The notes under the pieces: model-generated
The model's database searches: none
What the model saw: only the letters and a program-made list of their open reading frames with translations
What the model was told of the DNA's origin: nothing
Position numbers and translations under genes: made by a program
NCBI GenBank assembly: GCA_977020255.1
Contig: CDROCS010000506.1
Span: 1,736,001 to 1,800,000, forward strand
Direction: 5' to 3'
DNA: 64,000 nt
Origin: Obrimoposthia wandeli
Lineage: Eukaryota
Shown here: positions 2,354 through 61,846 of the stretch, in pieces
Numbering within the stretch: position 1 is the first letter of the stretch
How the letters are laid out: every line of letters starts with the position of its first letter

Positions 2354-4960
2354 GTGAGCATTATTGTGAAATGGATTAAACGATTATCCGTATTTTTTTT
2401 AGTTAGCGGACTGCTCGGTGTAGGTAGCATCATTGCACTATATTTTTATATCAAGCCTGAATTGCCTGATGTCACGACATTAAGAACAATGCAATTACAA
2501 ACACCAATGAAGGTCTTTAGCCAGGATGGCAAACTGATCTCTCAATTTGGTGAAAAGCGTCGTATCCCCATTGAGGTTGATGATGTTCCACCTTTGATGA
2601 TCAAAGCATTTCTAGCCACAGAAGATAATCGCTTTTATAGCCACCCTGGTATCGATCCTATCGGTATTGTGCGCGCTGCGACAGTCATGATAATGACCGG
2701 CGAACGTAAACAAGGTGCGAGTACCATTACCCAGCAGGTTGCCCGAAATTTCTTTTTAACTCGCGAAAAAACCTTTATTCGTAAGATTAAAGAAATATTT
2801 TTAGCCTGGCATATTGAACAAAACCTGTCCAAAGATGAGATATTAACTTTATACCTGAATAAGATCCCACTGGGTTATCGTTCATTTGGTATCGGCGCGG
2901 CAGCACAAGTTTATTACGGTAAATCGTTAAACGAATTAACTTTAGCGCAAATGGCCATCATTGCCGGTTTACCAAAAGCACCATCAGCGTTAAATCCAAT
3001 TCGCTCGCCAAAACGTGCTAAAGCCCGTCGTCATGTCGTATTACTGCGAATGTTAGATGAACAATATATCACCAGAGCACAATTTGACGAAGCAAACAAC
3101 GCCCCTATTACGGCTAAATATCACGGTGCCGAAATCGAATTATCAGCACCTTATTTAGCAGAAATGGTCCGTAGTGAAATCATTAAACGCTACGGTGAAG
3201 ATAAAGCTTATTCTCAAGGTTTAAACGTCTACACCACAGTACAAAGTGATCGCCAAACTGCAGCGACGAATGCCCTAATTAATAATTTACTTAATTATGA
3301 TTTACGTCACGGCTATCGTGGTCCATTAGGCCAAGCTTGGACTAACAATGAAGTACTGAGTCATGAAGACATTTTATTATTATTAAAAGATAAACCAAGT
3401 TACAACCCACTTGAGCCAGCGGTCATTACCGCAGTAACAGGCCAAACTGCCGAAGCGTTATTGGCAAATGGCGAACAAGTGATTGTGAGCTGGGATGGTT
3501 TAAAGTGGGCGCGTCCATTTATTTCTGACAAGAAACAAGGCCCTGCACCACAAACAGCCGCTGAGATTGTGAATGCGGGTGATATCGTCTTATTACGTCC
3601 GATGCCTACAACAACTCAATCAGCTACGCAATCAACAGCACAAGCTACGCAATGGATGCTAGGTCAGATCCCTGACGCTAGTTCCGCTTTGATCGCTATC
3701 GATAATAATGACGGTGCAATTGAAGCCTTAGTTGGTGGTTTTAATTATCAACAAAGTAAGTTTAACCGTGTTACCCAAGCCGAACGTCAAATTGGTTCAA
3801 ACATCAAACCATTTGTCTACTCTGCTGGTTTAGCACAAGGAGCAACACTTGCGACACTCATCAATGATGCGCCGATAAACCAAGTAGATAAGCGTGCGGG
3901 GACAGCATGGAGACCAAAGAATTCACCGCCAACTTATAACGGCCCAACTCGTTTCCGCTTAGGTTTAGCTCAGTCAAAAAATGTCATGTCTGTGCGTGTA
4001 TTCCGTCAAGTCGGTTTAAATAACGCCATTAATTACATGTCACGTTTTGGTTTCGATAAAGCTAAACTACCTCGCGATGAATCATTATCATTGGGCTCTG
4101 CATCACTTACGCCACTCGAAGTTGCCGTTGCTTTTGCGACATTCGCCAACGGTGGTTTTAAAGTTGACGCTTACTTTATTGATCGAATTGAGAATGTTGA
4201 TGGTGAAGTAATCTATCAAGCAGCACCAAAACAAGCTTGTCTCGAATGTGAAAAGCAAATTGCGTTAGGCACGGATAATCCTGAATACTGGTTAGACGTC
4301 AAAGGTGATGCACTGGAAAAATGTGATATTGCCGCTTATGGAACACCACAATTAGCACCACGCATTATCACCGAACAAAATGCCTTTCTGATGCGTGAAG
4401 TAATGGCGAGTGTGATTTGGGGCGGTGGCAGTTGGCGTCACAGAACCGGTTGGAATGGTACCGGTTGGCGCGCTGCAGCAGCACTGAAACGACACGATAT
4501 TGGTGGTAAAACAGGGACGACAAACGAGGCTAAAGATGCTTGGTTCTCAGGCTTTAACCCAGATCTATCTGCAACAAGTTGGATTGGTTTTGATGATCAC
4601 AGCCGTGAATTAGGCCGTGTGTCTCGAAATATTAATCTCGATAAAAACCAGATTAGTGGTGGTGAAGCTGGGGCAAAAACAGCGCAACCTGCTTGGATTG
4701 AATTCATGCAGCATGCACTAAAAGGGGTTCCCGAACATCCAAGTATATTACCGGATAATATCGTGCAAGTGCGTATCGATCGTGAGTCAGGTTTACTCAC
4801 GCATAAGTCCGATTATACCTCACGTTTCGAGTACTTTATTAAAGGTACAGAACCAACCGAATACGTGAATAATCAAGATTCAGATTCGTCATTCGATGAA
4901 ATAAATAATAGCGATGAAGACAGTGAGTCAGCAGATGAATCACTCGACGACTTGTTTTAG
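2354..4960 (+). CDS. mrcA: Penicillin-binding protein 1A (transglycosylase/transpeptidase)
   Basis: GT51 motifs EDNRFYSH, GASTITQQVARN, RKIKE; transpeptidase motifs SNIK, SKN, KTG. Confidence 0.97.
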   Translation: MSIIVKWIKRLSVFFLVSGLLGVGSIIALYFYIKPELPDVTTLRTMQLQTPMKVFSQDGKLISQFGEKRRIPIEVDDVPPLMIKAFLATEDNRFYSHPGIDPIGIVRAATVMIMTGERKQGASTITQQVARNFFLTREKTFIRKIKEIFLAWHIEQNLSKDEILTLYLNKIPLGYRSFGIGAAAQVYYGKSLNELTLAQMAIIAGLPKAPSALNPIRSPKRAKARRHVVLLRMLDEQYITRAQFDEANNAPITAKYHGAEIELSAPYLAEMVRSEIIKRYGEDKAYSQGLNVYTTVQSDRQTAATNALINNLLNYDLRHGYRGPLGQAWTNNEVLSHEDILLLLKDKPSYNPLEPAVITAVTGQTAEALLANGEQVIVSWDGLKWARPFISDKKQGPAPQTAAEIVNAGDIVLLRPMPTTTQSATQSTAQATQWMLGQIPDASSALIAIDNNDGAIEALVGGFNYQQSKFNRVTQAERQIGSNIKPFVYSAGLAQGATLATLINDAPINQVDKRAGTAWRPKNSPPTYNGPTRFRLGLAQSKNVMSVRVFRQVGLNNAINYMSRFGFDKAKLPRDESLSLGSASLTPLEVAVAFATFANGGFKVDAYFIDRIENVDGEVIYQAAPKQACLECEKQIALGTDNPEYWLDVKGDALEKCDIAAYGTPQLAPRIITEQNAFLMREVMASVIWGGGSWRHRTGWNGTGWRAAAALKRHDIGGKTGTTNEAKDAWFSGFNPDLSATSWIGFDDHSRELGRVSRNINLDKNQISGGEAGAKTAQPAWIEFMQHALKGVPEHPSILPDNIVQVRIDRESGLLTHKSDYTSRFEYFIKGTEPTEYVNNQDSDSSFDEINNSDEDSESADESLDDLF

Positions 4961-4974
4961 CTTTTAAGTTTTAA
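4954..4974 (+). repeat. 7-nt tandem repeat starting at the mrcA stop codon
   Basis: GTTTTAG / CTTTTAA / GTTTTAA; the first unit contains the TAG stop at 4958-4960. Confidence 0.6.
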
Positions 4975-4986
4975 CATGACGTAAAT

Positions 4987-5025
4987 AAAATGGCGCTGCT
5001 TTATTTAAAAAGCAGCGCCATTTTT
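4987..5025. terminator. Bidirectional intrinsic terminator between mrcA and oxyR
   Basis: AAAATGGCGCTGCTTT / AAAGCAGCGCCATTTT perfect inverted repeat with A and T tracts, between convergent genes. Confidence 0.9.
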
Positions 5026-5050
5026 ATATCGACTTTGTGTATCAGAGCAG

Positions 5051-5108
5051 CTAAACGATCGTTGCTGTTACTTTCTTATTAATCAGTTGTTGTTTAAACT
5101 ATCGTTGC
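5051..5108 (-). repeat. Degenerate 13-15 nt tandem copies of the oxyR 3' end
   Basis: Plus strand CTAAACGATCGTTGC (5051-5065), a degenerate unit, TTAATCAGTTGTTGT (5079-5093), TTAAACTATCGTTGC (5094-5108, contains the stop); outer units 13/15 identical. Confidence 0.7.
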
Positions 5109-5990
5109 CAGCACTTGTTTACTGATAACTTGCGCTATATCGTTAAAACAAGGACGTCTTACTGACCCTTTGCGATACAACAAAACAATTTTTCGAGTTG
5201 GTTCAGGTTCAACAAATTTAATGTACTCCACCCCTTCTGTAAATCGAGTACGTGGAATAGCCAGATGCGGTAATAATGTCACCCCCGCTTCAGCGGCAAT
5301 CATATGACGCAGAGTTTCTAAGCTAGTCGCTTTAAAGCTTTGATCTTCTTCTGCACCAGCCGTAAAACAATAATCCATCGCTTGATCACGCAGACAGTGA
5401 CCGTCTTCTAACATCAGTACTTTCTCGCCGCGCAATTCCGATAAATCCACGCGGTCTCGACCTTTAAAGCGGTGTCCACTCGGAATGATCAGCTCTAAGG
5501 GTTCTTTATATAACTCAATATGACCGTATTTTTCCATGACCGGTAAATAAGCTAATAATAGACAATCTAACTCGCCTTCATCCAACTGCTTTAATAATTC
5601 ATTAGTTTGATTTTCATGTAAAAACATATCTAAATCAGGGAATTTCTGTTTCATTGATGGCACGATCAATGGCAGCAAGTAAGGTGCAACAGTTGGGATC
5701 AAACCAATATGGATAGCACCTGCTGTCGGACTCGCATAACTCTTGGCAATTTCTTTAATGGCTTTAGATTCTAATAATACCGTACGCGCTTGATCAGCAA
5801 TTTGATCACCTGCAGGGGTAAACAATACTTTTCTTGATGTGCGTTCAATCAGGATCACGTCCAGTTCATCTTCTAATTTACGGATCTGGCCACTGAGTGT
5901 CGGTTGGCTGACAAAGCATTTTTCTGCCGCTTTTCTAAAGTGCTTCAATTCTTGTAACGCGACAAGATATTCTAAATCTCTTAAGTTCAT
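5094..5990 (-). CDS. oxyR: LysR-family hydrogen peroxide sensor OxyR
   Basis: MNLRDLEYLVAL...HFRKAAEKCFVSQPTLSGQI HTH; redox Cys pair LEDGHCLRDQAMDYC; ATSLETLRHM. Confidence 0.96.
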   Translation of the reverse strand: MNLRDLEYLVALQELKHFRKAAEKCFVSQPTLSGQIRKLEDELDVILIERTSRKVLFTPAGDQIADQARTVLLESKAIKEIAKSYASPTAGAIHIGLIPTVAPYLLPLIVPSMKQKFPDLDMFLHENQTNELLKQLDEGELDCLLLAYLPVMEKYGHIELYKEPLELIIPSGHRFKGRDRVDLSELRGEKVLMLEDGHCLRDQAMDYCFTAGAEEDQSFKATSLETLRHMIAAEAGVTLLPHLAIPRTRFTEGVEYIKFVEPEPTRKIVLLYRKGSVRRPCFNDIAQVISKQVLATIV

Positions 5991-7896: not shown

Positions 7897-7907
7897 GAGC
7901 AAATAAT

Positions 7908-8489
7908 ATGAACAATTCAAAATCTTTACTTATTAGTAGTACTTTATTTGCTGCAAGTACTTTTACTTTTGCAGCATCTGACCCCATTAACTTAAACTGT
8001 GACGCTCTATTAGATCAAGAATATTCAACCTTCGAATTTATTGATAATCTCAATGGCACAGTAACCGATTTACGAACGAGTCTAATTTGGGCTAAATGTA
8101 CCTTAGGTCAAACTTATGTTTCAGAGACAAACTCTTGCTCAAGTTCTGGTGCTGAAAATTATATCGACTGGGGAGATGCTCTATCCGCGGCCGCTGCTTA
8201 TGAAGTAAATAATATTTCAGGTTGGCGACTACCCAATATTAAAGAATTAGGTTCATTAGTGGATCGCAGTTGCGCTGCCCCCACAATTAACTTAACGCTA
8301 TTCCCAAATACGCTATCAAGTATTTATTACTCAAGTACACCATTCAAAGCCAGTAGTATTGATGCAAGCTATGATCACCTAGTATCACGTGTTATCGACT
8401 TTTCAGATGGTACTGAGATGCCACTAACAACACCAGAAAGTTCAAATACCAGCTACGTGATACGCGCTGTTAAAGGCGGATATAACTAA
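7908..8489 (+). CDS. Secreted DUF1566 (Lcl C-terminal domain) protein
   Basis: Signal peptide; DNLNGTVTDLRTSLIWAKC, WGDAL, GWRLPNIKELGSLV, INLTLFP motifs; GGAG RBS, 11 bp after the previous stop. Confidence 0.85.
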   Translation: MNNSKSLLISSTLFAASTFTFAASDPINLNCDALLDQEYSTFEFIDNLNGTVTDLRTSLIWAKCTLGQTYVSETNSCSSSGAENYIDWGDALSAAAAYEVNNISGWRLPNIKELGSLVDRSCAAPTINLTLFPNTLSSIYYSSTPFKASSIDASYDHLVSRVIDFSDGTEMPLTTPESSNTSYVIRAVKGGYN

Positions 8490-8531
8490 AGCACGACTAA
8501 CTCAAGCTCAAAAACTAACTCAAGATCAAAA
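8481..8531 (+). repeat. 18-nt tandem repeat after the second DUF1566 gene
   Basis: ACTAACTCAAGCTCAAAA (8496-8513) / ACTAACTCAAGATCAAAA (8514-8531), resembling the gene end TATAACTAAAGC. Confidence 0.7.
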
Positions 8532-8556
8532 ACGGCGAGCCTAAGCTCGCCGTTTT
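8529..8556. terminator. Bidirectional intrinsic terminator
   Basis: AAAACGGCGAGC-CTAA-GCTCGCCGTTTT between convergent genes. Confidence 0.9.
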
Positions 8557-9961: not shown

Positions 9962-10996
9962 ATGATCAGCAATAGCTACACCCTAGCAAGTCAATTACTC
10001 GCGCGTAACACTGCACATTTTGAAGATAAAGACCTGTTGATTGCGGGTTACATCGAAGATACGTATCCGACTGAATTAGCTAAAATAGCTAAAAAAGTAA
10101 CGTTATTCAGCTACGATTATTCAGCTAAACTACATTTTGATGATGTCAGCAATATTGATAACCATTGCTCGACTGAATACCAAGCGGTGAAGAAACACCA
10201 AGTTGCTTTGGTTTACATGTCAAAATCAAAAGCTGAAGTAGAATATTTATTAGCGAACATTACTGAACATCTTGAAGACGGTGCAATGATCTTCATGGTA
10301 GGTGAAAACAACGCCGGTATTCGTAGCGCAAATAAATTCTTTGCCCCGTATGGCGATATTTGTAACAAACTCGATGCAGCACGTCGCAGTTCATTGTTTG
10401 TGACTGAATTAAATAAACCAGTCGCTAAATTCGTGCAAGACGATTGGATCACAACATTCCCAGTCTCAGTAAATGGTGTTGATCTAACGGTATGTACATT
10501 ACCGGGCGTATTCAGCCACGGTAAATTAGACACTGGTAGTAATATCCTGCTTAATAACTTACACAAAAAACCATCAGGTCGTGTACTTGATCTTGGTTGT
10601 GGTGCAGGTATTATCGGTAGTTATATCGCTAAACGTTTCCCGACAAGCAAAGTTGAAATGACTGATGTAAGTGCACTGGCGGTTAAATCAAGTCAACTGA
10701 CATTAGCGGCGAACGAACTAGCAGGTCAAGCTTACCTTTCTGATGTGTTTTCTGATGTAAACGATAAATTTGATTATATCATTTCAAACCCACCGTTCCA
10801 TGCGGGATTGAAAACTCACTATGCAAGCACTGAAACTTTCTTAAAAGAAGCGAATAGCTACATCAACACACGCGGCCATTTAGTATTAGTTGCGAATAGT
10901 TTCTTGAAATACCCTGAGATTATTGAAGCGAGCTTTGGACATTGTTTATTACAAATAAAATCATCTAAGTTCGCAGTTTATTACGCAAATAAATAG
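9962..10996 (+). CDS. rsmC: 16S rRNA m2G1207 methyltransferase RsmC
   Basis: VGENNAGIRS, KLDAARR, LPGVFSHGKLDTGS, VLDLGCGAG, ISNPPFH motifs. Confidence 0.95.
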   Translation: MISNSYTLASQLLARNTAHFEDKDLLIAGYIEDTYPTELAKIAKKVTLFSYDYSAKLHFDDVSNIDNHCSTEYQAVKKHQVALVYMSKSKAEVEYLLANITEHLEDGAMIFMVGENNAGIRSANKFFAPYGDICNKLDAARRSSLFVTELNKPVAKFVQDDWITTFPVSVNGVDLTVCTLPGVFSHGKLDTGSNILLNNLHKKPSGRVLDLGCGAGIIGSYIAKRFPTSKVEMTDVSALAVKSSQLTLAANELAGQAYLSDVFSDVNDKFDYIISNPPFHAGLKTHYASTETFLKEANSYINTRGHLVLVANSFLKYPEIIEASFGHCLLQIKSSKFAVYYANK

Positions 10997-11060
10997 TTAC
11001 AAATATAGATAGTTGCGCGAATAAATAGTTACGTGAATAAATACTCGCGTAACTAAATCG
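10981..11060 (+). repeat. Five 16-nt degenerate tandem copies of the rsmC 3' end
   Basis: TTACGCAAATAAATAG (gene end with stop) / TTACAAATATAGATAG / TTGCGCGAATAAATAG / TTACGTGAATAAATAC / TCGCGTAACTAAATCG. Confidence 0.85.
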
Positions 11061-11067
11061 CATAAAT

Positions 11068-11107
11068 AAAAACGCCCATAACAAGCAATTGTTATGGGCG
11101 TTTTTTT
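11068..11107. terminator. Bidirectional intrinsic terminator rsmC/plsC
   Basis: AAAACGCCCATAACAA-GCAA-TTGTTATGGGCGTTTT plus T tract. Confidence 0.9.
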
Positions 11108-11946: not shown

Positions 11947-14205
11947 TTATTCTTGTGCTACATCGATACTATCAACACGTTGTAATCCACGCGGTAATTT
12001 GAAACCACGACGTCCTCGTTCACCTTTATAATGTTCTAAATCAGCAGGTTTCAATGTTAATTTACGCTTACCGGCATGCAGTGTTACTGACTGCCCTTGC
12101 GGAACGATAGTTAGCATTTGCACAAACTCTTCCCGACTTTTAACGCGGGCAGACGGAATGTTCATGAGTTTATTACCCTTACCTTTCGATAATAATGGCA
12201 ATGATATCAGTGGGAAAATCAACATTCGGCCTTCGTTAGAAATAACTAAACAATGGTCAGAGTTAATATCGTTAACCGCTTGCGGTTCAATCACCAATCC
12301 GCCAACAGGTAAGGTCAATAATGCTTTACCGTTCTTATTACGGCTGACCATGTCACTGAACTTACCAATGAAACCATAACCGGCATCAGAACTCAGCAAG
12401 AATTGCTGGCTATCATCTGCCATCAGCGCATGCGCAAAGGTTTGTCCTGGTGCAAGCGTAAATCGTGTCGTTAACGGCTCGCCCTGACTACGGGCCGATG
12501 GCAATGTATGGGCATCCAATGCGAATGAACGACCACTCGAATCAATAAAGACTGCAGGGCAATTACTGCGCCCTTCTGCGGCATCTTTATATTCATCACT
12601 GGCTTTATAACTGAGTCCGTTAGCATCCACATCATGACCTTTCGCACAACGTGCCCAGCCTTGTTGTGATAACACCACTGTCACGGCTTCATTTGGCATT
12701 AATTCTTTTTCTGTTAACGCTTTGGCTTCTGTACGTTCGATAATTGGTGAACGACGTTCATCACCAAATTTCTCAGCGTCCATAATCAATTCTTTTTTCA
12801 CTAATGTAGCTAAGCGACGATCTGAACTTAATAGCTGTTCTAGTTTATGGCGCTCAGTGTTTAACTCACCTTGCTCACCACGGATACGCATTTCTTCTAA
12901 CTTAGCTAAATGACGTAATTTAAGCTCAAGTACCGCTTCTGCTTGTTTGACCGATAAATCAAAACGACGAATTAATTCTGCTTTCGGATCATCGTACTGA
13001 CGAATGATCTCAATCACTTCATCAATATTTAAGAAGGCAATCAACAAACCATCAAGGGTATGTAAACGCGCCAGTACTTTATCTAAACGGAACTGTAAAC
13101 GACGGCGGACAGTCGTATTACGGAATTCTAACCATTCTGATAATATTGTCTTCAAACCTTTAACTTGTGGTTTTTCATTCAAACCAATCATGTTCAAGTT
13201 AACACGGTAGTTTTTCTCTAAATCAGTACTGGCAAATAAATGCGCCATTAGCTGATCGATATCAATACGGTTAGAGCGTGGGATAATAACCAAACGGGTT
13301 GGGTTCTCATGATCTGATTCATCACGTAAATCCGCCACCATAGGTAATTTCTTCGCCTGCATTTGTGCCGCGATTTGCTCTAAAATTTTACCACCAGAAA
13401 CTTGATGCGGTAGTGCCGTAATAACAATATCACCACTTTCTAGGCTAAATACCGCACGCATTTTAATGCTGCCTTTACCTGTTTCGTAGATTTTGGCGAT
13501 ATCTTTTTCTGGTGTAATAATCTCTGCTTCAGTCGGATAATCAGGGCCTTTTACATAAGCCATTAATTCTGACAATTCAGCTTTAGGTTTATCAATTAGA
13601 TGCAAACAAGCGTTAGTAATTTCACGCACGTTATGTGGCGGAATATCCGTCGCCATACCGACCGCAATACCCGTCACACCATTCAATAAAATGTGCGGTA
13701 AACGCGCAGGTAATAATTGTGGCTCTTTCATGGTGCCGTCAAAGTTAGGCGACCAGTCAACCGTGCCTAATCCCACTTCACCTAATAGTACTTCAGCAAA
13801 TTTTGACAATTTAGCTTCGGTGTAACGCATTGCCGCAAATGATTTTGGATCATCCGGTGCACCCCAGTTACCTTGGCCATCAACCAGCGGATAACGATAA
13901 GAAAATGGCTGCGCCATCAATACCATTGCTTCATAACAAGCACTGTCGCCATGGGGATGATACTTACCTAGAACATCACCAACCGTACGCGCTGACTTCT
14001 TATATTTTGCCCCTGCATGCAAGCCAAGCTCAGACATTGCATAGGTAATACGGCGTTGCACTGGCTTTAACCCATCACCAATATGAGGCAAGGCACGATC
14101 CATGATCACATACATGGAATAGTTCAAATATGCTTGCTCGGTAAATTCCCTTAGCGGTTGTTCTTCGACACCATCTAAGCTCATATCAATAACGTCAGTC
14201 ATCAA
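11947..14205 (-). CDS. parC: DNA topoisomerase IV subunit A
   Basis: [38 protein letters not shown] catalytic Tyr; C-terminal beta-pinwheel repeats. Confidence 0.97.
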
Positions 14206-14444
14206 AAGTCCTGTTATTTAGAATAAAATAAAAATTTAATAATTAAAGGCGAAAACAACATATGCTATTCATGTGCATTTATATTATGATGAAACGCGAA
14301 AATTAGCTTAGATAATAACAATTAGCCTGCTGTAGACGTGTTATAGATAGTTATTTCAACTATAACCCGTCACTATTATAATTATCTAAGGTGACTTTCT
14401 TTAGCTCATAATCCGATTAAAAACAAAATGACAGGAAATTAATC

Positions 14445-15044
14445 ATGGGGAGCAAGGCATTATATTCTCTTATAGAGAAAACTAAATTATTATTTCCATC
14501 ATTAACTAAACGCGTCGGCATGTTGAGTAATTCATTCAAATCACTACCGCGCCTACACCGTAAACTATTGCCTATACTATCACTGATTGTCATCGTTCTG
14601 CTGCTTATACCTAGCACTGATATAACGAATGTGGATAACACGGCAGCGAATGAACGTAAGTCAATCACACTGACTATCGCGTCAACTCAAAATGTAGCAA
14701 ATAAAGCAGGTCTAGAACAGGGACCAACAAGTAATACGCCACAGCCAGTACAAATTAAGGTTTTAGATCCAGAAAATATTGATGGAGAATGGCGGGCACA
14801 TGTTATTCGTAAAGGTGATTCTGTTTATCGCATTTTCCGCCAGTATGATATACCTTCTGCTGTACTACATACTTTAATCGCAGTACCGACACCAGAACGA
14901 TATATAACCCAAGTAAAACCCGGACAAGTAATGTCATTTTACATCTCGACGGCGGGTAAATTAATACAGCTTCGAATCACCGATGCTGACAGCGCACCAA
15001 CGTTATTTGCATTACGCGAAGACGGTAGTTATATTTATCGCTAA
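14445..15044 (+). CDS. OapA/YtfB-like LysM peptidoglycan-binding protein (true start may be downstream)
   Basis: LPRLHRKLL OapA N-terminal motif, TM helix, LysM-like HVIRKGDSVYRIFRQY, C-terminal REDGSY. Confidence 0.75.
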   Translation: MGSKALYSLIEKTKLLFPSLTKRVGMLSNSFKSLPRLHRKLLPILSLIVIVLLLIPSTDITNVDNTAANERKSITLTIASTQNVANKAGLEQGPTSNTPQPVQIKVLDPENIDGEWRAHVIRKGDSVYRIFRQYDIPSAVLHTLIAVPTPERYITQVKPGQVMSFYISTAGKLIQLRITDADSAPTLFALREDGSYIYR

Positions 15045-18047: not shown

Positions 18048-18102
18048 CAATAGCCCACCGAATTAACGATCATCTATTGCGTCACACATACTGCTATTAC
18101 TG

Positions 18103-19398
18103 TTATTTTTTATCTTCGTTACTAAACAGCGCTTCAATAAACTCTTCTGAATTAAAGGTACGTAAATCATCAATACCTTCACCAATACCGATAAAACGAA
18201 TTGGGATCTCAAATTTATCTGCCACAGCAAAGATAACACCACCTTTAGCAGTACCATCTAATTTAGTAATAGTAATGCCAGTCAGACCTACAGCTTCTTT
18301 AAATAGTTCCGCTTGGCTTAAGGCATTTTGGCCGGTACCAGCATCAATCGTTAACATGATCTCGTGCGGCGCAGTCGCATCATGCTTACGCATAACTCTA
18401 ACCACTTTTTTCAGCTCTTCCATCAAGTGGGCTTTATTTTGTAAACGACCGGCTGTATCAGCGATAAGTACATCAACATCTTTAGCTGTTGCTGATTGCA
18501 TAGCATCAAACAATACCGATGCACTATCTGCACCTGTGTGTTGAGCTACCACAGGGATACCGTTACGGTCGCCCCATACTTGTAATTGTTCTACCGCAGC
18601 AGCACGGAACGTATCACCAGCTGCTAGCATCACTGATTTACCTTCACCTTGGAATTTCTTCGCCATCTTACCGATAGTAGTGGTTTTACCCACACCGTTC
18701 ACGCCAACCATTAAGATCACGTGGGGTTTGTTATTACTATCAATAACCAGCGGTTCATCAACCTTGTGTAATAACTCTGCCATGTCTTTTTTCAGAATGT
18801 CATACAAGGCTTCAGCATCTTTTAAGTCTTTACGTGATGCTTGTTGGGTTAAATTATCAATAATACGCGTAGTTGTCGCGACACCCAGATCGGCAATTAA
18901 TAGCTGTTCTTCAAGTTCTTCAAATAACTCATCATCGATATGCTTACCACGGAAAAAGTTTTTAAAGCCACTACCGATATTACCTTTGGTACGTGATAAA
19001 CCACGTTTCAAACGAGTAAAGAATTTATCTTTATCAGCAGGTTCGTCTGCGTCCACACTTTCTGTAGCATCTGTCTTAGCATCAGTGCTAACAGTTTCGA
19101 TTTCTGCTGGTGCTGGTGTTGCTGTGACAATCTCAGTTTCTGTTACAACCGCTTCTGGTTCTATTATTACTGGTTCTACAACTACAGGCTCAGCCGCGAT
19201 AATGTCACTTTCGCTAGCAGCACTGTTGTTTTCGAAATCAGTGAAAAGTCGTAAATCTGCAGCGCGACGAATGGCTTTTTCTTCCGCCGTTTCATCATCA
19301 CTCGATACAAGTAATTCCGGATTAACTTTATCTTCATCCGTGCTGATCGCGTCTTTTTTACCTAAACCAAACCAATTCTTCATGCTTTTTTTTGCCAT
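18103..19398 (-). CDS. ftsY: SRP receptor FtsY
   Basis: Acidic N-domain; GVNGVGKTTTIGK, DTFRAAA, DTAGR, TKLDGTAKGG. Confidence 0.97.
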   Translation of the reverse strand: MAKKSMKNWFGLGKKDAISTDEDKVNPELLVSSDDETAEEKAIRRAADLRLFTDFENNSAASESDIIAAEPVVVEPVIIEPEAVVTETEIVTATPAPAEIETVSTDAKTDATESVDADEPADKDKFFTRLKRGLSRTKGNIGSGFKNFFRGKHIDDELFEELEEQLLIADLGVATTTRIIDNLTQQASRKDLKDAEALYDILKKDMAELLHKVDEPLVIDSNNKPHVILMVGVNGVGKTTTIGKMAKKFQGEGKSVMLAAGDTFRAAAVEQLQVWGDRNGIPVVAQHTGADSASVLFDAMQSATAKDVDVLIADTAGRLQNKAHLMEELKKVVRVMRKHDATAPHEIMLTIDAGTGQNALSQAELFKEAVGLTGITITKLDGTAKGGVIFAVADKFEIPIRFIGIGEGIDDLRTFNSEEFIEALFSNEDKK

Positions 19399-19498
19399 TT
19401 TTAGAAAACCTTACTTTCGCCAGTCTTGAACTGCTACAATGACCCAATATCAATATGGTGATTATATTATCACCTTTCTGTCCAGACAAAGAATTACT

Positions 19499-20113
19499 AT
19501 GGCAAAATCTAGCACAAAACAACAAAATCAACGTCCTTCTGGACATATTCGGATCATCAGTGGTCAATGGCGCGGTCGAAAGCTCCCAGTTAAGGATGTG
19601 ATTGGTCTACGCCCTACAACCGACCGTGTAAAAGAAACCGTATTCAATTGGTTATCCCCTTACGTACGCGACAGCCATTGTTTAGATCTGTTTGCTGGTA
19701 GTGGTGGTTTAATCTTTGAAGCATTATCACGTTATGCTGAATCAGGTTTACTGTTTGAAAAAGACGCCGGTGCAGCAGCGCAATTACAACAAAATATTGA
19801 ATTGCTGAAAGCCGATAATGCCCAGTTAGTACGTGGTGATACGTTAAAATTATTGACCAAAGTACCAACACAAACTTATGACATGGTATTTATCGACCCA
19901 CCTTTCCGTCAAGATTTACTGGAAGACTGTTGCGCTAAACTCGAAGAATACAATTGGTTAAGTGCTGATGCGGTGATTTATATCGAACGTGAAAAAGAAC
20001 TTAATCAAGTTAAGTTACCCGCTAATTGGCACATTTTAAAAGACAAACAAGCCGGACAAGTTTGTTTTGAGCTATACCAACGTCAAGCTGTCATAAACAC
20101 GACCGCTGAATAA
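19499..20113 (+). CDS. rsmD: 16S rRNA m2G966 methyltransferase RsmD
   Basis: IRIISGQWRGRKL, LRPTTDRVKETVFNWL, DLFAGSG, DPPF; divergent from ftsY. Confidence 0.96.
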   Translation: MAKSSTKQQNQRPSGHIRIISGQWRGRKLPVKDVIGLRPTTDRVKETVFNWLSPYVRDSHCLDLFAGSGGLIFEALSRYAESGLLFEKDAGAAAQLQQNIELLKADNAQLVRGDTLKLLTKVPTQTYDMVFIDPPFRQDLLEDCCAKLEEYNWLSADAVIYIEREKELNQVKLPANWHILKDKQAGQVCFELYQRQAVINTTAE

Positions 20114-20143
20114 ACGCTGCAACATAACAGTAAATGAATAAAC

Positions 20144-20175: not shown

Positions 20176-20294
20176 ATTATGCCTATATGCTGTAGCCTTA
20201 TTAGCCATATATTGCATACCTAATAAAACCCCGAATACCTTCCCAGCTCGCAATGAATACCCAACAATATCGCCTGTCTATGGTGTGAGTGTTT

Positions 20295-20347
20295 AGTCTA
20301 TAATTTCAGCTATAACTTTTAGTCTATAACTTTTAACCTATAATGAG
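20295..20347 (+). repeat. 13-14 nt tandem array of TATAAT/TATAAC-containing units upstream of the LysE gene
   Basis: AGTCTATAATTTC / AGCTATAACTTTT / AGTCTATAACTTTT / AACCTATAATGAG. Confidence 0.8.
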
Positions 20348-23108: not shown

Positions 23109-25010
23109 TTAGATTTTGAATTTTCCTACAATAGCTTCAAGCTGCGTATTGGTGTCGGCGAGCGCCTGACAGTTACTCAGCTCTTTTTCACCGTTCTCGG
23201 TTAGCACTTCAGCCATGTTGGTAATCGCGGTCATATTCTTACTAATATCTTCAGAAACTGCACTTTGTTCCTCAGCGGCAGTAGCAATCTCTATCGCAAT
23301 ATCATTAATGTATGCGATTGATTTAGCCATACTGTCGAGATCCACATTTATTCGCTCAGTGCTTTCAGCTGTATGACTGCAACTCACCTTAATCGTATCC
23401 ATATTGGTCACTAATCGATTAGCACCTGAAGTCAAAATAGTAAGCATATTGGCAATTTCAGAAGTACTCTCTTGAGTTCGAGCAGCTAACGCACGAACTT
23501 CATCAGCAACGACAGCAAACCCCCGTCCTTGTTCACCAGCTCGGGCAGCTTCAATTGCTGCATTTAATGCTAACAAGTTGGTCTGGTCTGCAATATCCCC
23601 AATTACTTTGAGTAAATTAGCTATGTTGAAGATATTACCGTTCATATTAGTGATATCTCCAGACATAGACTCCACTTCGTCTACTAATGAAGAGACAGTC
23701 TGAACAGCTTTGGAAACTACCATCTTAGAGGCTTCGGCTTGTTCTTTCGCATTTTGTGTATGACTCGAAGCCTGAGAAGCATGACGAGCGACAGTCTCTG
23801 CCGTCACGCTCATTTCATGAACAGCTGTAACAACTTGATTAGCCTCGTCAAAATGTAATTGTAATACTTCACTGTTTTTTTCTGACTGGTTAGATAGCTC
23901 ACTCACTCGGGCTGAAGTATCTAATGTTGTTTGCGCAACTTCTTGCATCATACTTTGCAGATTGCCAATAAAAGTATTGATACCCAATGATATTTGTCCC
24001 AGATCATCTTTGCTTTTTACTTCAAGGCGACGAGTAAGGTCACCCGTGCCCATAGATAGGTCAAGGACAGTGTCTTTAAGCGCTAGGATAGGTTTGTACA
24101 ATCGATTTAATATTATCAGTACGATAGCGATGGCGATAAGTATCACAATGAATGAGGTGATAATCGTCTCAACTAACTCAGCTTCTAAATCGGAGTACAT
24201 CACCGAATCAGCAATACCAACATAGATAAACCAACGACTATCACCGGGCAATTTCACATCAGAGAAATAGGCATGTTTTTTTACGCCTTCCCATTGATAG
24301 TCTGCGACACCATGACCTTGTTCTGTCATCTTTTGTTCTAGTGCTGGGAGGTCAAAATAGATGCCAATCTCATCGCCTGGATCTGTAGAAGCAAGTTGAG
24401 TAAACTTATCATCAAGCACAAGTAATACAGCACCAGGGAAATCAACTTGCGAGATAATATCGTTGAGAATATCAAGAGATATATCACCAGCAACAACGCC
24501 TCGATTACCGATTGGGCTTGCTAAACTTATCATTAACCCGCCAGTCGTATCATCAGTATAAATATCCGTCAGGATGGTAGACTGTTTAGCCTGCGCATTT
24601 TTATACCAATCTCGCGTTCTTGGATCATAATCACTCACGTCAAATACGCCGTTGTCTCCTCCGGAATCACCAAAAGCACGTCCATCGCTATAACCAGCAG
24701 TAAAACTGGCATATCTAGCCGATTTAGTCACCATTTTAGCCACATTCACATAATCAGCATCAGAGTGTTCACCTTCAAAGTAAATACGGCTGGATTCTAA
24801 CGCATCAACCCAAGAATTTATCTTTAGTTCCACTTTATTTGAAGCGTTATCTACGATGATCCGCGACATACTTTCAATAGAAGCCATTTGTTGGGTCTTA
24901 AATTTATCATAAGACAACCAATTAAAGATTAATAAGGCGACTGATACTAAGATAGTCATGGTTAAGACAAGCCGTTGTTTGAAACCAAGGCTTTGTAGTG
25001 ATAAAGGCAT
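23109..25010 (-). CDS. Methyl-accepting chemotaxis protein (dCache-like sensor, HAMP, signalling domain)
   Basis: Two TMs; [10 protein letters not shown] and IYTDDTTG Cache motifs; [34 protein letters not shown]. Confidence 0.95.
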
Positions 25011-29000: not shown

Positions 29001-29084
29001 GAATAACAGTTCGAATAACGGCTCGAATAACAGTCCTAATAACAGTGCTAATAGCTGATCGACCATCTACTCGAATAGCATTTA
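29001..29084 (-). repeat. 12-nt degenerate tandem array from the metA stop toward metH
   Basis: Plus strand GAATAACAGTTC / GAATAACGGCTC / GAATAACAGTCC / TAATAACAGTGC / TAATAGCTGATC / GACCATCTACTC / GAATAGCATTTA (last unit contains the metA stop). Confidence 0.8.
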
Positions 29085-30266: not shown

Positions 30267-30884
30267 ATGCTCACTTATATCTATTTAATTGCCATCACTG
30301 CCGAAGCTATGTCCGGCGCACTAATGGCGGGTCGTCGTAATATGGACATCTTTGGTGTGGCCGTTATTGCCTTTGTCACTGCACTTGGTGGCGGTACGGT
30401 ACGTGATGTATTATTAGGTAACTTTCCAATTTCTTGGACCCAACATCCGCACTATGTGTATATCACTATATGCGCGGGTTTGTTTACCATTCTGATTGCT
30501 AAACACATGAACCATTTACGCCGCTTATTCTTAGTACTCGATGCGCTAGGACTGATTGCATTTACTATCATTGGCTGTAATGTGGCGATGAAACTCGGTT
30601 ACCACCCAACAGTGATCGTTATGGCGGGCATGATAACGGGTATTTGTGGCGGGGTGTTACGTGACTTACTCTGTAACCGAACACCTGTGGTATTCAGCAA
30701 AGAAATATACGCTGGCATATCATTATTAGTGGCGCTACTTTATCTAGGTTTAGAGCACTTTGGTGTTGACCACAACATCACCCTTATTGTGGCTTTCAGT
30801 GTTGGTGTTACTTTACGTTTGTGTGCTATTTATTGGAAATGGTCATTACCAACCTTTAACTACACATCGGAAGAATGGGACTAG
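30267..30884 (+). CDS. UPF0126/YadS (TRIC-like) membrane protein
   Basis: AMSGAL...MDIFGV...TALGGGTVRDVLLG and LDALGL...GICGGVLRDLL internal repeat. Confidence 0.9.
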   Translation: MLTYIYLIAITAEAMSGALMAGRRNMDIFGVAVIAFVTALGGGTVRDVLLGNFPISWTQHPHYVYITICAGLFTILIAKHMNHLRRLFLVLDALGLIAFTIIGCNVAMKLGYHPTVIVMAGMITGICGGVLRDLLCNRTPVVFSKEIYAGISLLVALLYLGLEHFGVDHNITLIVAFSVGVTLRLCAIYWKWSLPTFNYTSEEWD

Positions 30885-38487: not shown

Positions 38488-38551
38488 AGTAAAAAGAGTT
38501 AAAACATTGCAAAAATGCGATAACTCTTCTGATTAAATACCAAAACTTCTC
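38484..38551 (-). terminator. Nested hairpin after aceF, possible terminator or stabiliser
   Basis: GAGAAGT/ACTTCTC and AAGAGTTA/TAACTCTT nested inverted repeats. Confidence 0.45.
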
Positions 38552-38608
38552 TTTAATTAAATACTAAAACTATTACTCGATTAAAATTAAGCTTTTGCTT
38601 AACTAAAA

Positions 38609-40204
38609 TTAAAGTACTAGTTGACGAAGATCTGAAAGATATCCGTTTAATGCTGTAACAAAACGAGCACCATCAGCACCATCGATCACACGGTGATCAT
38701 ATGAAAGAGCCATTGGTAACATAAGACGAGGAGCAAAGTCTTTGCCATCCCACTTAGGTTTAATTTCAGAACGTGATACGCCTAAAATTGCAACTTCAGG
38801 AGCATTAACGATTGGTGTAAATTGAGTACCACCGATACCGCCAAGGCTAGAAATTGTGAAACAACCGCCTTGCATGTCAGAAGAAGTTAGTTTACCAGAA
38901 CGTGCTTTCTTAGAGATAACAGCAAGATCTTGGCAAAGCTCGTAAATACCTTTCTGGTCAACGTTACGGATAACCGGAACAACTAGACCGTTTGGAGTAT
39001 CAACAGCAACACCAACGTTGATGTATTTCTTCTGAATGATGCTTTCGCCATCTTCGCCGATTGAAGTGTTGAACTTCGGATAATCAGCTAACGCTTTAGC
39101 TACTGCTTTAACGATGAAGATAAGTGGAGAAATCTTGAAGCCTTTATCTTGCTTAACAAGTTTGTTGTTCTCAACTTTACGGAACGCTTCTAGTTCAGTG
39201 ATGTCTGCTTCGTCGAACTGTGTAACGTGTGGGATTTTAACCCAGTTACGGTGCAGGTTCGGACCAGAAATTTTCTGGATGCGAGTCATCTTAACTACTT
39301 CGATTTCACCAAATTTAGCGAAATCAACTTTCGGCCATGCTAGTACGTCCATACCAGAACCGTTGCCGCCAGTAGCGCCAGATTCTAAACGTTTAACTGC
39401 ATTTTTAACGTAAGTTTGTACGTCTTCTTTCGCGATGCGACCTTTACGACCAGTTGCGCCAACTTTATCTAAGTTAACACCGAATTCGCGTGCTAGACGA
39501 CGAACTACTGGTGATGCATGGTGGTAAGCGTCGTTTTCAACGAAACCAGTTGCTTCAGGTGCAGTTTTTGATGCAACAGGAGCAGCAGCTTTCGGTGCTT
39601 CAACTTTTGCAGCAGGTGCAGCGGCAGCAGCTTGTGCTACAGGAGCAGCAACAGGTGCAGCGCCAGCAACTTCAAACGTCATGATGAAAGAACCAGTTGT
39701 TACTTTATCGCCAACAGCTGCTTTAATTTCTTTCACAACACCAGCGAATGGTGCAGGAACTTCCATTGAAGCTTTATCGCCTTCAACAGCCATTAACGTG
39801 TCTTCTTCAGCAACAGTATCGCCAACTTTAACTGAAATCTCAGTTACTTCCACTTCATCGTCGCCGATGTCAGGAATGTTAACTTCTAATACTTGTACCG
39901 CAGCAGCTGCAACAGGAGCCGCTTCAGCTACTGGAGCAACAGCAACGTCAGCTACTGGAGCCGCTGCGCTTGCTGCATCAGCAAAGATAAAGATTAATGA
40001 ACCAGTTTTCACTGTGTCGCCAACATTTACACGGATTTCTTGTACTACACCAGCTTGTGGTGCAGGAACTTCCATAGACGCTTTGTCACCCTCAACAGCA
40101 AGCAAAGTATCTTCTTCTGCAACTGTATCGCCGATTTGAACGGAAATCTCAGTTACTTCTACTTCATCATCACCAATGTCTGGAACGAAAATTTCAATAC
40201 TCAT
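38609..40204 (-). CDS. aceF: Pyruvate dehydrogenase E2, two lipoyl domains
   Basis: Two GDKASMEVP lipoyl motifs, [13 protein letters not shown]3-binding domain, DHRVIDG catalytic motif. Confidence 0.97.
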
Positions 40205-44056: not shown

Positions 44057-44139
44057 CAAAAATAAGATGATTTCACTACACTAGATTATACTTCACGAAT
44101 CACTAAATACTGGTCGAATGATTATTCGACACAAATTAC

Positions 44140-44192
44140 ATTCGTATTAGATGCGTATTAGATATATTTAATACCTATTAGATACCTGTTAA
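44140..44192 (-). repeat. 9-11 nt tandem array beginning at the ampE stop
   Basis: Plus strand ATTCGTATTAG / ATGCGTATTAG / ATATATTTA / ATACCTATTAG / ATACCTGTTAA (last unit contains the stop); each unit carries TAA on the minus strand. Confidence 0.75.
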
Positions 44193-45037
44193 ATAATAGT
44201 ACCGTTAATGGTAAGGAGGGAAATAATTGTCACAAAGAAGGTAATATTACGTTTCGCGAGTTGCACTAAATAGCAGGTGTAATCATAACATTTATCAGTT
44301 TCGACGTTGGCTTTACTCGCGAGATATACCACCTTACCTAATAAATCAAATTCAGGCGTAGAGAAGTCACGCCAGCTGCGTAAACTCTGTGGTAGTGCCG
44401 CCTGTTCCTCAGCCACCAGCGCAAAACCAAACATGGTTAAGCGTGCCGGCAACCAATCAACAATACGCATAACCCGATGGATACCACTGCGATTTAACTG
44501 CTTACTGTGATGCTGAGTAACATATTTATGGTAACTACGCGCTACCACGTACAGCGTTAAACCAACAGGACCAGCGATGATAAAGTAAAAAATCACCGCA
44601 AAATAAAAACGGTAGTTAAGCCAAACTAGCTGTTGAGCGACAGCTTGAGTCAATAACGTCGCGCAAAAACGTTCACTATTTACATCTAAACAATTGGCAT
44701 ACATGCCCTTAGCTTCTAGATCATTACGACTTAGCGCTTTGAGATATTCGCGATAATCACGACGATAATCACTCCCACCAAAGCTCATCAATAATAAGAC
44801 TAGCCAAGTAAGGGTGGTAAAAATGCCATAATACAGACCCGCCAGTGCATCCAATAAGCTGTACATTAAGATAGCCGGTAACGTGATAATCACTAACGTA
44901 CCAAACAGACCAGCATTGATAAATGAAGGTAATAACGGGAACAGATAACGCTGCAGCACACTATCGAGCTGAAGTTTAGCGCTTAAATGCACCACTCGTT
45001 CAATCAGCAATGCCAGCAGCAGAGATATTAAAGCCAT
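44189..45037 (-). CDS. ampE: AmpE membrane protein
   Basis: MALISLLLALLIER, YRFYFAVIFYF..GP, DWLPARL; directly downstream of ampD. Confidence 0.88.
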   Translation of the reverse strand: MALISLLLALLIERVVHLSAKLQLDSVLQRYLFPLLPSFINAGLFGTLVIITLPAILMYSLLDALAGLYYGIFTTLTWLVLLLMSFGGSDYRRDYREYLKALSRNDLEAKGMYANCLDVNSERFCATLLTQAVAQQLVWLNYRFYFAVIFYFIIAGPVGLTLYVVARSYHKYVTQHHSKQLNRSGIHRVMRIVDWLPARLTMFGFALVAEEQAALPQSLRSWRDFSTPEFDLLGKVVYLASKANVETDKCYDYTCYLVQLAKRNITFFVTIISLLTINGTII

Positions 45038-45640: not shown

Positions 45641-45822
45641 TATGCAAGACTACTGTTTGCAATAACGACTAGTTACAATAGCGGCTAGTTACAATAGATC
45701 TACTTTACAATGATATCGTTAGCAATAACATAGTTACATCGGTAAAATACAGCCCTGAGCCAGTAAAATATAGCCCTAAGTCAGTCACTGAGCCAGCAAA
45801 GTGCTAAGCCAGTAAACTAACC
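45641..45822 (+). repeat. Two consecutive degenerate tandem arrays (16-nt then 21-nt units) in the ampD / protease divergent region
   Basis: TTGCAATAACGACTAG / TTACAATAGCGGCTAG / TTACAATAGATCTACT / TTACAATGATATCGTT, then GTAAAATACAGCCCTGAGCCA / GTAAAATATAGCCCTAAGTCA and shorter derivatives. Confidence 0.8.
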
Positions 45823-46361: not shown

Positions 46362-47344
<983 letters not shown>

Positions 47345-51290: not shown

Positions 51291-52184
51291 ATGCAAGACT
51301 TAGCGCTACTCTTTCAACTCACTCCTTGGCTATTATGGTTAACGGTTGCCCTTCTTGGTCTGCTCGTCGGTAGTTTCTTGAATGTCGTCATTTACCGCTT
51401 ACCCATTATGATGGAAAGTGAATGGAAGGAGGAATGTACGGTTTATTTTAGCGATGAATGCAAAACAGCTAGCAGTAAGCCTGTATCTGAAACAACTAAA
51501 TTCAACCTATTATTACCCCGCTCTGCTTGTCCTAAATGCGGCCATAAAATTACCGCATTAGAAAATATCCCTGTGATTAGCTGGCTAATATTACGAGGTA
51601 AGTGCAGCAGTTGTGCCAATCCAATTTCAGCTCGCTACCCAAGCATTGAATTATTAACCGGTTTACTCTCACTTGTAGTCGCTTTATATATCCCTTATGG
51701 CATTCAATTAGCTGGCGCGTTGATCTTAACCTGGACCTTAGTAGCGCTGACTTTTATCGACATAGATAAAATGCTATTACCCGATCAAATAACGCTACCA
51801 CTATTATGGTTCGGTCTGTTTCTTAACGTAAATTATGCTTGGGTAACGCCATCTGACGCCATCATTGGTGCTATCGTTGGTTATCTATCACTGTGGTCGG
51901 TTTATTGGGGCTTTAAGTTATTAACCGGTAAGGAAGGTATGGGCTATGGTGATTTCAAACTACTCGCTGCATTTGGTGCTTGGTTCGGTTGGCAATCAAT
52001 TTTAGCTATCGTATTACTGTCTTCATTTGCCGGTGCCATTATTGGCATTACCCAGATTGCATTAAAGAAACATACCCAAGGCAACCCTATTCCATTTGGC
52101 CCTTACTTGGCTATCGCTGGTTGGTTGTACCTTATTTGGGGCGATCAAATTGTCGATTTCTATTTAATTAATTTTATTTACTAA
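51291..52184 (+). CDS. pilD: Prepilin peptidase/N-methyltransferase
   Basis: GSFLNVVIYRLP, CPKC...C..C, IDIDKMLLPD, EGMGYGDFKL, IPFGPYL. Confidence 0.97.
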   Translation: MQDLALLFQLTPWLLWLTVALLGLLVGSFLNVVIYRLPIMMESEWKEECTVYFSDECKTASSKPVSETTKFNLLLPRSACPKCGHKITALENIPVISWLILRGKCSSCANPISARYPSIELLTGLLSLVVALYIPYGIQLAGALILTWTLVALTFIDIDKMLLPDQITLPLLWFGLFLNVNYAWVTPSDAIIGAIVGYLSLWSVYWGFKLLTGKEGMGYGDFKLLAAFGAWFGWQSILAIVLLSSFAGAIIGITQIALKKHTQGNPIPFGPYLAIAGWLYLIWGDQIVDFYLINFIY

Positions 52185-52213
52185 ATCTATCTATTAAATC
52201 TATATATTAAGGC
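52175..52213 (+). repeat. Three 13-nt copies of the pilD 3' end
   Basis: TATTTACTAAATC (contains the stop) / TATCTATTAAATC / TATATATTAAGGC. Confidence 0.8.
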
Positions 52214-57270: not shown

Positions 57271-57391
57271 AATCTTTTTTTAACTGATGAATGTGTGGCA
57301 CTAAATATAAACAATTTGATGCCACAATTCTATCTGTATTTATCTTAGCGCTGATTTGTAACATCAGTTCCGAGATACTAAACCTATTTGT

Positions 57392-57429
57392 TTAGATTAT
57401 AACGCCAACTTTTTTAGATTATATTGCCA
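57392..57429 (-). repeat. Duplication of the lpxC 3' end (22-nt period)
   Basis: Plus strand TTAGATTATAACGCCA (57392-57407) / TTAGATTATATTGCCA (57414-57429, contains the stop). Confidence 0.75.
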
Positions 57430-60983: not shown

Positions 60984-60988
60984 TATCA

Positions 60989-61807
60989 CTACTCTTTATT
61001 GTCATTTTTCCAGCCAACTGAGAAACCTGTATCGTAACGTAAATCTATATAGGCTATTTTTTCTTTATCTAATACTGCGACATAGTCGATATAACGCTGG
61101 ATACGAGAAATCGCATCTTCTCGCCCCAAGCGCAACATAATACCATTACTTAGTACAACCGTGATTGCATTGCGTAAATTAACTGTCATCGCAACGATAT
61201 TGTAATTATTTAACTGCAGTAATCCGTTGAATTCGTTGTACTTTAAAAGTGCTTGTTTGATTCTATCATCAGGACTATAAAGTTTCACTAAGGATTCCGG
61301 CGCTCTATCGATGTTCGCATCGAAAACAATACCATCTTCGTTTAATAATTGACTATCATTCCAGATCGCGACAACCGGTTGTTCTTGGATATAAACGCGT
61401 AATAAATCAGGCCAACTTTTACGTACCGAAGCATGGTATACCCAAGGTAATGATTCAATTTTACGTTGAATATCATCGACATTAACCGAAAAATAATTTT
61501 CTATCGCTGGTTTTTCCAGCAATACCGCACGGATATCATCATCACTAACGTAATCTCGATCGCCTTGAATAATCAGTGCTGACATTGGCATTTTACTGGC
61601 GTCGGTCAAGTATGTTTCCATACTGCTGAACATCCAGCTAAAAAACACTATCACCATGAAGAAGAAAAATAGACCTAAACCACGCTTTAAACGTGATGGT
61701 CCCAATGTTTCCACGCAGGATTCATCCGCTTGAATTTCAAGTTCGGTCAATGCAAAGATATTATCATCTTGCACTGCTTCTTCCGGCGTTATCGTGACAG
61801 TTGTCAT
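60989..61807 (-). CDS. ftsQ: Cell division protein FtsQ
   Basis: TM, POTRA (LPWVYHASVRKSWPD), YIDLRYDTGFSVGW. Confidence 0.96.
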   Translation of the reverse strand: MTTVTITPEEAVQDDNIFALTELEIQADESCVETLGPSRLKRGLGLFFFFMVIVFFSWMFSSMETYLTDASKMPMSALIIQGDRDYVSDDDIRAVLLEKPAIENYFSVNVDDIQRKIESLPWVYHASVRKSWPDLLRVYIQEQPVVAIWNDSQLLNEDGIVFDANIDRAPESLVKLYSPDDRIKQALLKYNEFNGLLQLNNYNIVAMTVNLRNAITVVLSNGIMLRLGREDAISRIQRYIDYVAVLDKEKIAYIDLRYDTGFSVGWKNDNKE

Positions 61808-61809
61808 AT

Positions 61810-61846
61810 TTAAATACGTCGCTTAATACGTCGATCAATGCGCAAG
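61810..61846 (-). repeat. Three 12-13 nt copies of the ddl 3' end
   Basis: Plus strand TTAAATACGTCGC / TTAATACGTCGA / TCAATGCGCAAG (contains the stop). Confidence 0.75.

Follow-up and report, generated by a model that had tools for sequence, protein, structure and literature searches.

What places short tandem copies of a gene's own 3′-end, stop codon included, behind many genes of one chromosome segment? The question was raised by an initial annotation of a 64-kb stretch of DNA (41% GC, zero N), positions 1,736,001–1,800,000 of the 3.78-Mb contig CDROCS010000506.1 in the Obrimoposthia wandeli assembly GCA_977020255.1; the whole stretch is called here the window. The window is a piece of a Moritella chromosome: its NadC is 92–98% identical to NadC of Moritella species (98% for M. 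dasanensis) and at most 73% identical to NadC of other genera. The source assembly is a mixed one (1.35 Gb, 6912 contigs); its main subject is not Moritella, whose chromosome came along as a passenger or by co-assembly. We found that in this chromosome and in the other Moritella species compared, the last bases and stop codon of roughly one gene in 10 recur behind it head to tail, in decaying copies. With a probability of about two in three, these copies are short tandem duplications similar to variable-number tandem repeats (VNTRs) that Moritella makes or retains, outside coding sequence, two to three times as often as related genera do, and that selection filters.

Tandem copies at gene ends

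Repeats were measured by a lag-repeat score T (periods of 6–30 nucleotides (nt), match +1, mismatch −1.5), with the stop codon required to sit in the first copy; significance was assessed at each of 47 window stops by 300 shuffles of the downstream DNA. Tandem Repeats Finder (TRF) was run as an independent detection of arrays, and the last 33 nt of each open reading frame (ORF) together with 130 nt downstream were also inspected by eye. Gene names were confirmed with NCBIfam and Pfam for mrcA, oxyR, rsmC, metA, the yadS-like gene, yacL, ampE and lpxC, as well as for nadC, pilD, ddl, ftsY, yacG, EamA and M23.

At 11 of the 47 stops the stop-anchored repeat was reached by no more than one of 300 shuffles. 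About nine of these 11 are true arrays: rsmC, rsmD, yadS, yacL, ampE, nadC, pilD, lpxC and ddl. The remaining two of the 11, the ends of a PdhR-like gene and of ampD, seem to be no arrays but a conserved hairpin and an overlap of coding sequences, respectively.

On the forward strand, the nadC end (SMRFIK-stop) is followed by three 21-nt copies (47207..47283; T=36, 0/300 shuffles), found by TRF at 47208–47283 as 21 nt × 3.2. The rsmC end is followed by about four degenerate 16-nt copies (10981..11070; T=19.5, 0/300; also in TRF), the array ending at a terminator (11068–11105), and the pilD end by two 13-nt copies that fill the pilD–coaE spacer (52167..52210; T=16.5, 0/300; also in TRF). Behind rsmD (19439..20113) a 9-nt word containing the stop is met again at 28 nt (20107..20143; T=9.0, 0/300). 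On the reverse strand, 11-nt copies follow the ampE end (44135..44195; T=15, 0/300; also in TRF), one 22-nt copy follows lpxC (57388..57429; T=12.5, 1/300) and two 12-nt copies follow ddl, in the ddl–ftsQ spacer (61813..61842; T=10.5, 0/300). Between the convergent stops of yadS and yacL there are four 10–11-nt copies of the yadS end (30874..30926; T=9.5 and 8.5, 0–1/300), every one of them carrying a stop on both strands.

Seven stops were marginal, with T reached by 3–15 of 300 shuffles: those of mrcA, both DUF1566 genes, the gene at 11160, ftsY, aceF and yacG. The mrcA end has about two 7-nt copies (4955..4974, forward strand; T=8.0, 9/300); its ortholog in genome G004 carries a longer 7-nt array with T=11. 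The second DUF1566-like gene has two 18-nt copies (8483..8533, forward strand), detected by TRF at 8496–8533 with 95% match and marginal by T; this array abuts a terminator (8529–8556). At ftsY, a 9-nt unit occurs twice (18089..18107, reverse strand; T=7.5, 3/300; TRF score 31).

The initial annotation had claimed stop-anchored arrays at 11 or more loci. The claim holds for rsmC, yadS/yacL, ampE, nadC, pilD, lpxC and ddl, is marginal for mrcA and the second DUF1566 gene, and fails for metA and oxyR as they had been described. The 12-nt array of about four units in the metA 3′ flank (29001..29053, reverse strand; TRF) is real, but it starts 28 nt past the stop; it is thus not stop-anchored, nor is it visibly derived from the metA gene end. 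The oxyR repeat, taken for a unit of about 15 nt, is actually one copy of 39–42 nt. Among the weaker cases that had been put forward, ftsY and yacG came out as marginal; lpdA, aceE, M23 and EamA were not supported (T of 4–5, reached by more than 100 of 300 shuffles in this window). Arrays do lie before terminators, as had been remarked, for example at the second DUF1566 gene and rsmC.

Periods of the arrays range from 6 to 32 nt (median 12), copies number about two to four, and the median share of matches is 85%. The commonest period is 11 nt (13 of 69 arrays), a figure in which orthologous arrays were counted repeatedly and on which we put no weight.

Identical ORF calling and statistics were applied to three sets: this contig (the window and 200 kb upstream of it), other Moritella species, and other genera. 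Orthologous regions were taken from 13 Moritella genomes (labelled G001 and so on); the GTDB family comprises only those 13. The share of stops with T≥9 was 21.7% for the window and 8.1% for the 200 kb that had not been selected; for other Moritella species it was 14.8%, and for other genera 1.7%, the last set being 74 loci that all surround nadC, i.e. a sample from one locus only. Odds ratios for Moritella against the other genera were 5.2 and 10.4 (p=2.5e-5 and 1.7e-7). The low-repeat genera of this comparison include Shewanella, Psychromonas and Photobacterium. In controls, T≥9 was observed at ∼1% of stops with shuffled downstream DNA and at ∼2% in a mirror test at start codons.

In TRF counts, strict arrays spanning the stop amounted to 3.6 and 6.9 per 100 genes in two Moritella sets, 1.1 in Shewanella, 0.8 in Aeromonas/Tolumonas, 0.5 in Psychromonas and 0 in Photobacterium/Vibrio, with repeat density within coding regions equal across all groups. 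The window is richer in arrays than its surroundings, yet the excess is not an artefact of the initial selection of loci. Stop-anchored repeats are genus-wide in Moritella and are absent as an excess from the other genera sampled, which bears out the lineage-specific tendency that had been proposed.

Differences between Moritella species

We scored 41 orthologous gene ends in at least four species. A stop-anchored repeat was present in at least one species at 15 of these ends and in all species at none; 34 of 235 gene-by-species cells were positive.

At rsmC, gene-end copies lie past the stop in six of the six species compared; the array is strong only in the window, G001, G004 and G005, and weak in G007 and G008. 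Copy number varies by species, G004 having three perfect 14-nt units in place of the 16-nt ones, and the distance from stop to terminator ranges from ∼24 nt to >100 nt. The latter range argues against a fixed 3′ untranslated region (UTR) spacing, one of the functions suggested earlier for the copies. The number of units between yadS and yacL runs over species as 0, 1, 1, 3, 4, 4, with the two convergent stops overlapping in G004, where there are no units. In the ddl–ftsQ spacer the series is 0, ∼1, 2, 2, 2, 4, the first three copies in G004 being identical; the pilD–coaE spacer has 0–3 copies among other species. Young perfect copies in G004 (rsmC, ddl) thus exist beside decayed copies elsewhere. 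Different stop-anchored arrays follow ampE in G001, G003, G005 and L003, and the lpxC duplicate is common to the window, G007 and G004 while absent in G001, G005 and G008. At the second DUF1566 gene there is a single unit in G001, while in G004 the stop anchors another array, with a 14-nt period. The metA flank contains about three to four units in relatives (by eye); in G001 a different repeat begins at the stop, with T=6 only.

At nadC, only one decayed copy is retained in G005, G007, G008 and three metagenome contigs, equivalent to the window's last and oldest copy; the number of copies including the gene end is two versus four between species. The two newer copies of the window resemble the coding end and sit between it and the older shared copy. 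The coding end is the conserved source copy of the arrays, in agreement with the initial idea of local duplication of gene ends; at NadC, for instance, other genera have the LSMRF end as well. A metagenome pattern scan produced matches in other species only, ∼86% identical.

The oxyR end has a different structure. On the reverse strand, the coding end (5094–5135) is followed by a second copy of 39 nt (5051–5089), the pair taking up 5051..5135. Two alleles of the OxyR C-terminus exist in Moritella: ...AQVISKQVLATIV, found in the window and in closely similar form in G007 and G004, and ...AQLINKKVTATIV, found in G001 and G005. The window translates the AQVISKQVLATIV allele; the AQLINKKVTATIV allele comes immediately after it as a second, untranslated copy. 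This copy agrees with the G001/G005 allele, and the 19 nt beyond it agree with the flank of that allele; the coding end and the terminator are of the G007/G004 type. Such an arrangement fits a short recombination mosaic, or an old duplicate lost alternatively by lineage; it suggests that gene-end copies can underlie exchange of a protein C-terminus.

The largest array that we saw is located in the 3′ flank of oxyR in G005 (L120/L125): a 13-nt unit consisting nearly throughout of TAG/TTAG words, in about six copies, beginning within the oxyR stop, with T=48.5.

The stop of ampD and the start of ampE overlap in most species. G001 departs from this at the junction (M. dasanensis, L002 8626..9201): a 13-nt array made of the ampD end, with three copies if the gene end is counted, holds the two genes 37 nt apart; arrays can therefore uncouple overlapping operon genes.

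One array behaves otherwise. A 24-nt repeat (2–2.3 copies) is situated in the aceF 3′ flank, upstream of lpdA (38524..38612, reverse strand; TRF 38524–38585). The aceF–lpdA spacer is near-identical over ∼120 nt in five species (L162–L166) whose other 3′ flanks are scrambled. We regard this repeat as a candidate pair of operator sites or a candidate lpdA promoter element.

Sources of the excess

Over 58 downstream copies the stop positions were 81.6% identical to the gene copy and other unit positions 83.5% (p=0.62). A stop triplet is retained at the homologous place in 74% of copies, about what a per-base identity of 82–84% predicts; in both newer nadC copies the in-frame TAG has become TAC. 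One third of array periods are multiples of 3. By the strict score, 4.5% of true stops were inside repeats versus 5.3% of other intergenic stop-like triplets. The stop is spanned by 19 of the 79 arrays that lie behind Moritella genes, where uniform placement predicts 8.7 over whole spacers and 18.3 in the first 100 nt. The start of an array relative to the stop had no preferred phase, being spread from 0.1 to more than one period; we thus rejected a duplicated segment anchored exactly on the last base of the stop, for which a pile-up one period before the stop was not seen.

Repeat coverage in Moritella is ∼1% in coding regions, 1–3% just upstream of starts, 13–14% at 0..+30 after stops and ∼6% beyond, and it is flat at 4–5% in other genera. 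A paired per-gene test yielded 24% at −12..+30 versus 16% at +45..+87, a non-significant difference (p=0.076). There is thus a mild, non-significant pull toward the stop atop a general two- to three-fold non-coding excess.

An explanation by chance similarity in AT-rich DNA, or by an assembly artefact, could draw on the composition of the arrays (75% AT versus 65% in the surrounding 3′ flank) and on the failure of several weaker loci of the initial annotation to beat shuffles. However, 8–22% observed against ∼1% with shuffled DNA, together with orthologous arrays in metagenome contigs and in Moritella genomes of separate assembly, makes it scarcely tenable overall and refutes it for the strong loci; AT-richness alone was rejected, as Psychromonas, equally AT-rich (39% GC), shows no excess. 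The copies could also be recombination scars. A diverged Moritella allele would enter by one crossover within the conserved gene, its other joint being illegitimate and lying in the variable flank, so that resident and incoming gene ends come to stand next to each other. The two parentages visible at oxyR are what such an event would leave, and oxyR is the one clear case; as a general account we consider it very improbable, since neither periods of 7–13 nt nor short units that occur three or four times without change, as in rsmC and ddl of G004, can result from it, and the newer nadC copies come from the resident gene end. Somewhat better is the standing of arrays as selected 3′ UTR elements, whether as multi-frame backup stops, to space the stop from the terminator, or as AU-rich sites of binding or cleavage that tune mRNA decay. 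Retention of most stop triplets, placement before terminators and conservation of the aceF array in five species speak for it; yet the retention is no higher than overall identity predicts, the in-frame stop was lost in nadC copies, copy number changes from 0 to 4 between close species with no gene end bearing an array in all of them, and spacing is highly variable without a shared motif, so that we hold this explanation to be improbable.

A site-directed mutational hotspot, in which the gene end or terminator provokes re-copying of the preceding bases and the duplication itself is focused on termination regions, would account for the coverage peak directly after Moritella stops against flat values elsewhere. 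It would also agree with arrays abutting terminator hairpins at the second DUF1566 gene and rsmC, and with the rsmC, ampE, oxyR and DUF1566 ends gaining independent arrays with different units by species. Two triggers are candidates: stable terminator hairpins, at which replication might stall in a cold-living organism, and conflicts between transcription and replication where ribosomes and RNA polymerase stop. Set against this are the non-significant proximal–distal difference, a stop-spanning count equal to the uniform expectation, the missing phase preference, arrays in divergent promoter regions and far from stops, and the cold-living Psychromonas without excess; we rate the hotspot as unlikely, though worth keeping in sight. 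More doubtful is the idea that Moritella has an active process of its own, either enzymatic or tied to termination or terminator hairpins, by which the last 7–30 bases of genes are copied again; 3′ UTRs would then be rebuilt from gene ends and copies would occasionally replace a C-terminus, the latter being suggested by the two OxyR alleles.

The initial annotation had offered duplication focused on termination regions as one possibility and selection for backup stops as another; the counts above give weak support to the former and do not support the latter. It had also named two results that would refute it, arrays no more frequent at stops than elsewhere in AT-rich intergenic DNA and stop triplets decaying at the neutral rate, the second leaving a mutational bias rather than a function. 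What we found is largely of this kind as far as function is concerned, whereas a mutational bias stands.

We thus return to VNTR-like duplication filtered by selection. Where the first of two copies still contains the final codons together with the stop, the duplication would leave ORF and protein intact; it would thus be tolerated and survive. Duplications inside genes, over ribosome-binding sites or over promoters would be removed by selection, so the main stretch where duplications survive would extend from just before the stop to the terminator. The gene end, held by selection on the protein, would keep seeding copies, and those downstream would decay. Once two copies exist, further slippage could add or remove units, which would explain why copy number and period differ between species. 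Turnover is rapid and probably neutral, by replication slippage as we infer, and the copies probably are not a backup-stop device.

Several points weigh against this interpretation. The data amount to 264 kb of this genome and ∼20–60 kb per relative, and genes came from an ORF heuristic, with imprecise start positions. The coverage peak at the stop (13–14% versus 6%) may hint at a hotspot linked to the stop or terminator, the paired test notwithstanding. For the oxyR copy, recombination of two alleles is a better explanation than slippage, and conservation of the aceF array may mean that at least one array is constrained, possibly regulatory. Finally, no gene-content cause of the Moritella bias was found among the repair genes checked (ExoI, RecJ, ExoVII, MutS, Ku). 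Loss of repeat-stabilising repair genes was rejected, with ExoI (PF08411), RecJ, XseA (the ExoVII large subunit) and MutS present in five of five Moritella genomes; Ku end-joining was rejected as well, Ku being absent from the Moritella genomes searched.

We file the arrays as a variant of ordinary slippage-type tandem repeats; the new part is the genus-wide excess at gene 3′-ends. Bacterial VNTRs reportedly arise by slipped-strand mispairing (Levinson and Gutman 1987; Lovett 2004; reviews of bacterial tandem repeats). The Moritella arrays share with them head-to-tail, locus-specific units, copy number varying between related genomes (at the same locus, 0–4 for ddl and yadS/yacL and 0–3 for pilD), young perfect along with old decayed arrays, and a mostly non-coding location. 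They differ in the excess at gene 3′-ends, where in about one gene of 10 the array opens with the coding end and its stop, in a low copy number (2–4) and in unusually decayed copies. Backup (tandem) stop codons are in-frame and conserved; the arrays likewise place extra stop triplets shortly past the real stop, but in any frame and decaying like neighbouring bases. MIRU are, reportedly from Supply et al. in 1997, a dispersed mycobacterial family with 40–100-bp units of shared sequence. Like the Moritella arrays of the ddl–ftsQ and pilD–coaE spacers, they are tandem repeats in operon spacers that overlap the stop of the upstream gene; unlike MIRU, the Moritella units are unrelated to each other and 6–32 nt long.

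Borg extrachromosomal elements have pervasive, locus-unique, fast-evolving tandem repeats, some starting within gene ends; these are essentially perfect, common in ORFs as amino-acid repeats with a period divisible by 3, and A-enriched (PMC9879509). The likeness consists in genome-specific, locally unique repeats of independent origin and fast evolution. In Moritella, by contrast, copies are ∼85% alike, coding density of repeats is no higher than in other genera, and A and T are at 0.379 and 0.376. Marine Beggiatoaceae have TAACTGA direct-repeat arrays, abundant in intergenic regions, with one heptamer at 169 loci (PMC4679880). They resemble the Moritella arrays as intergenic tandem arrays with a unit containing stop triplets; the Moritella arrays differ in having their own unit at each locus, derived from the neighbouring gene.

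A dispersed family of the REP, ERIC, MITE, MIRU or TAACTGA type was rejected: the nadC array region has a single match in the assembly, and units share barely more words with each other than shuffled ones do, confirming the earlier claim of separate units and no mobile family. Duplication of attachment sites by an integrative element was rejected too, as copies are directly adjacent, with periods of 7–42 nt and no integrase element between them. Rfam at gathering thresholds gave no match to a structured RNA family over the whole window. A full-text literature search found no description of the pattern in Moritella or as a general bacterial phenomenon.

If whole genomes bear out the genus-wide bias, Moritella would lend itself to studies of how bacterial 3′ UTRs and intercistronic spacers originate, of the pace of their turnover, and of how new C-termini can arise when a decayed copy fuses back onto the gene. 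Strain typing would also profit, since the arrays would offer many ready variable markers in this genus, to which a fish pathogen belongs. The gap of five- to ten-fold from sister genera with apparently normal repair genes points to an unknown determinant of the tandem-duplication rate.

Arrays away from gene stops

The process is not confined to gene ends, as there are two arrays (16 nt and 21 nt; TRF) in a divergent promoter region at 45660..45785. A 14-nt array of 3.9 units (20292..20343, forward strand; TRF) ends at the start codon of the gene at 20343 and was classed as start-spanning. The acnB–yacL spacer contains a control-type array away from the stops, 11 nt × 3.7 (31329..31369; TRF). 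Its unit (CGATTAATAAG-like) varies by species: 3.7 decayed units here, six perfect ones in G005 (L133, near 12650..14491).

In the stitched contig, 13 kb upstream of the window (187427..189193, L100), a 12-nt unit occurs twice in the last 26 nt of an ORF and three times past its stop; here the repeat has entered the protein C-terminus in frame. Within the window, positions 23454–23620, inside the gene at 23109..25010, match dozens of places per Moritella genome, as expected of the conserved signalling domain in a large family of chemoreceptors.

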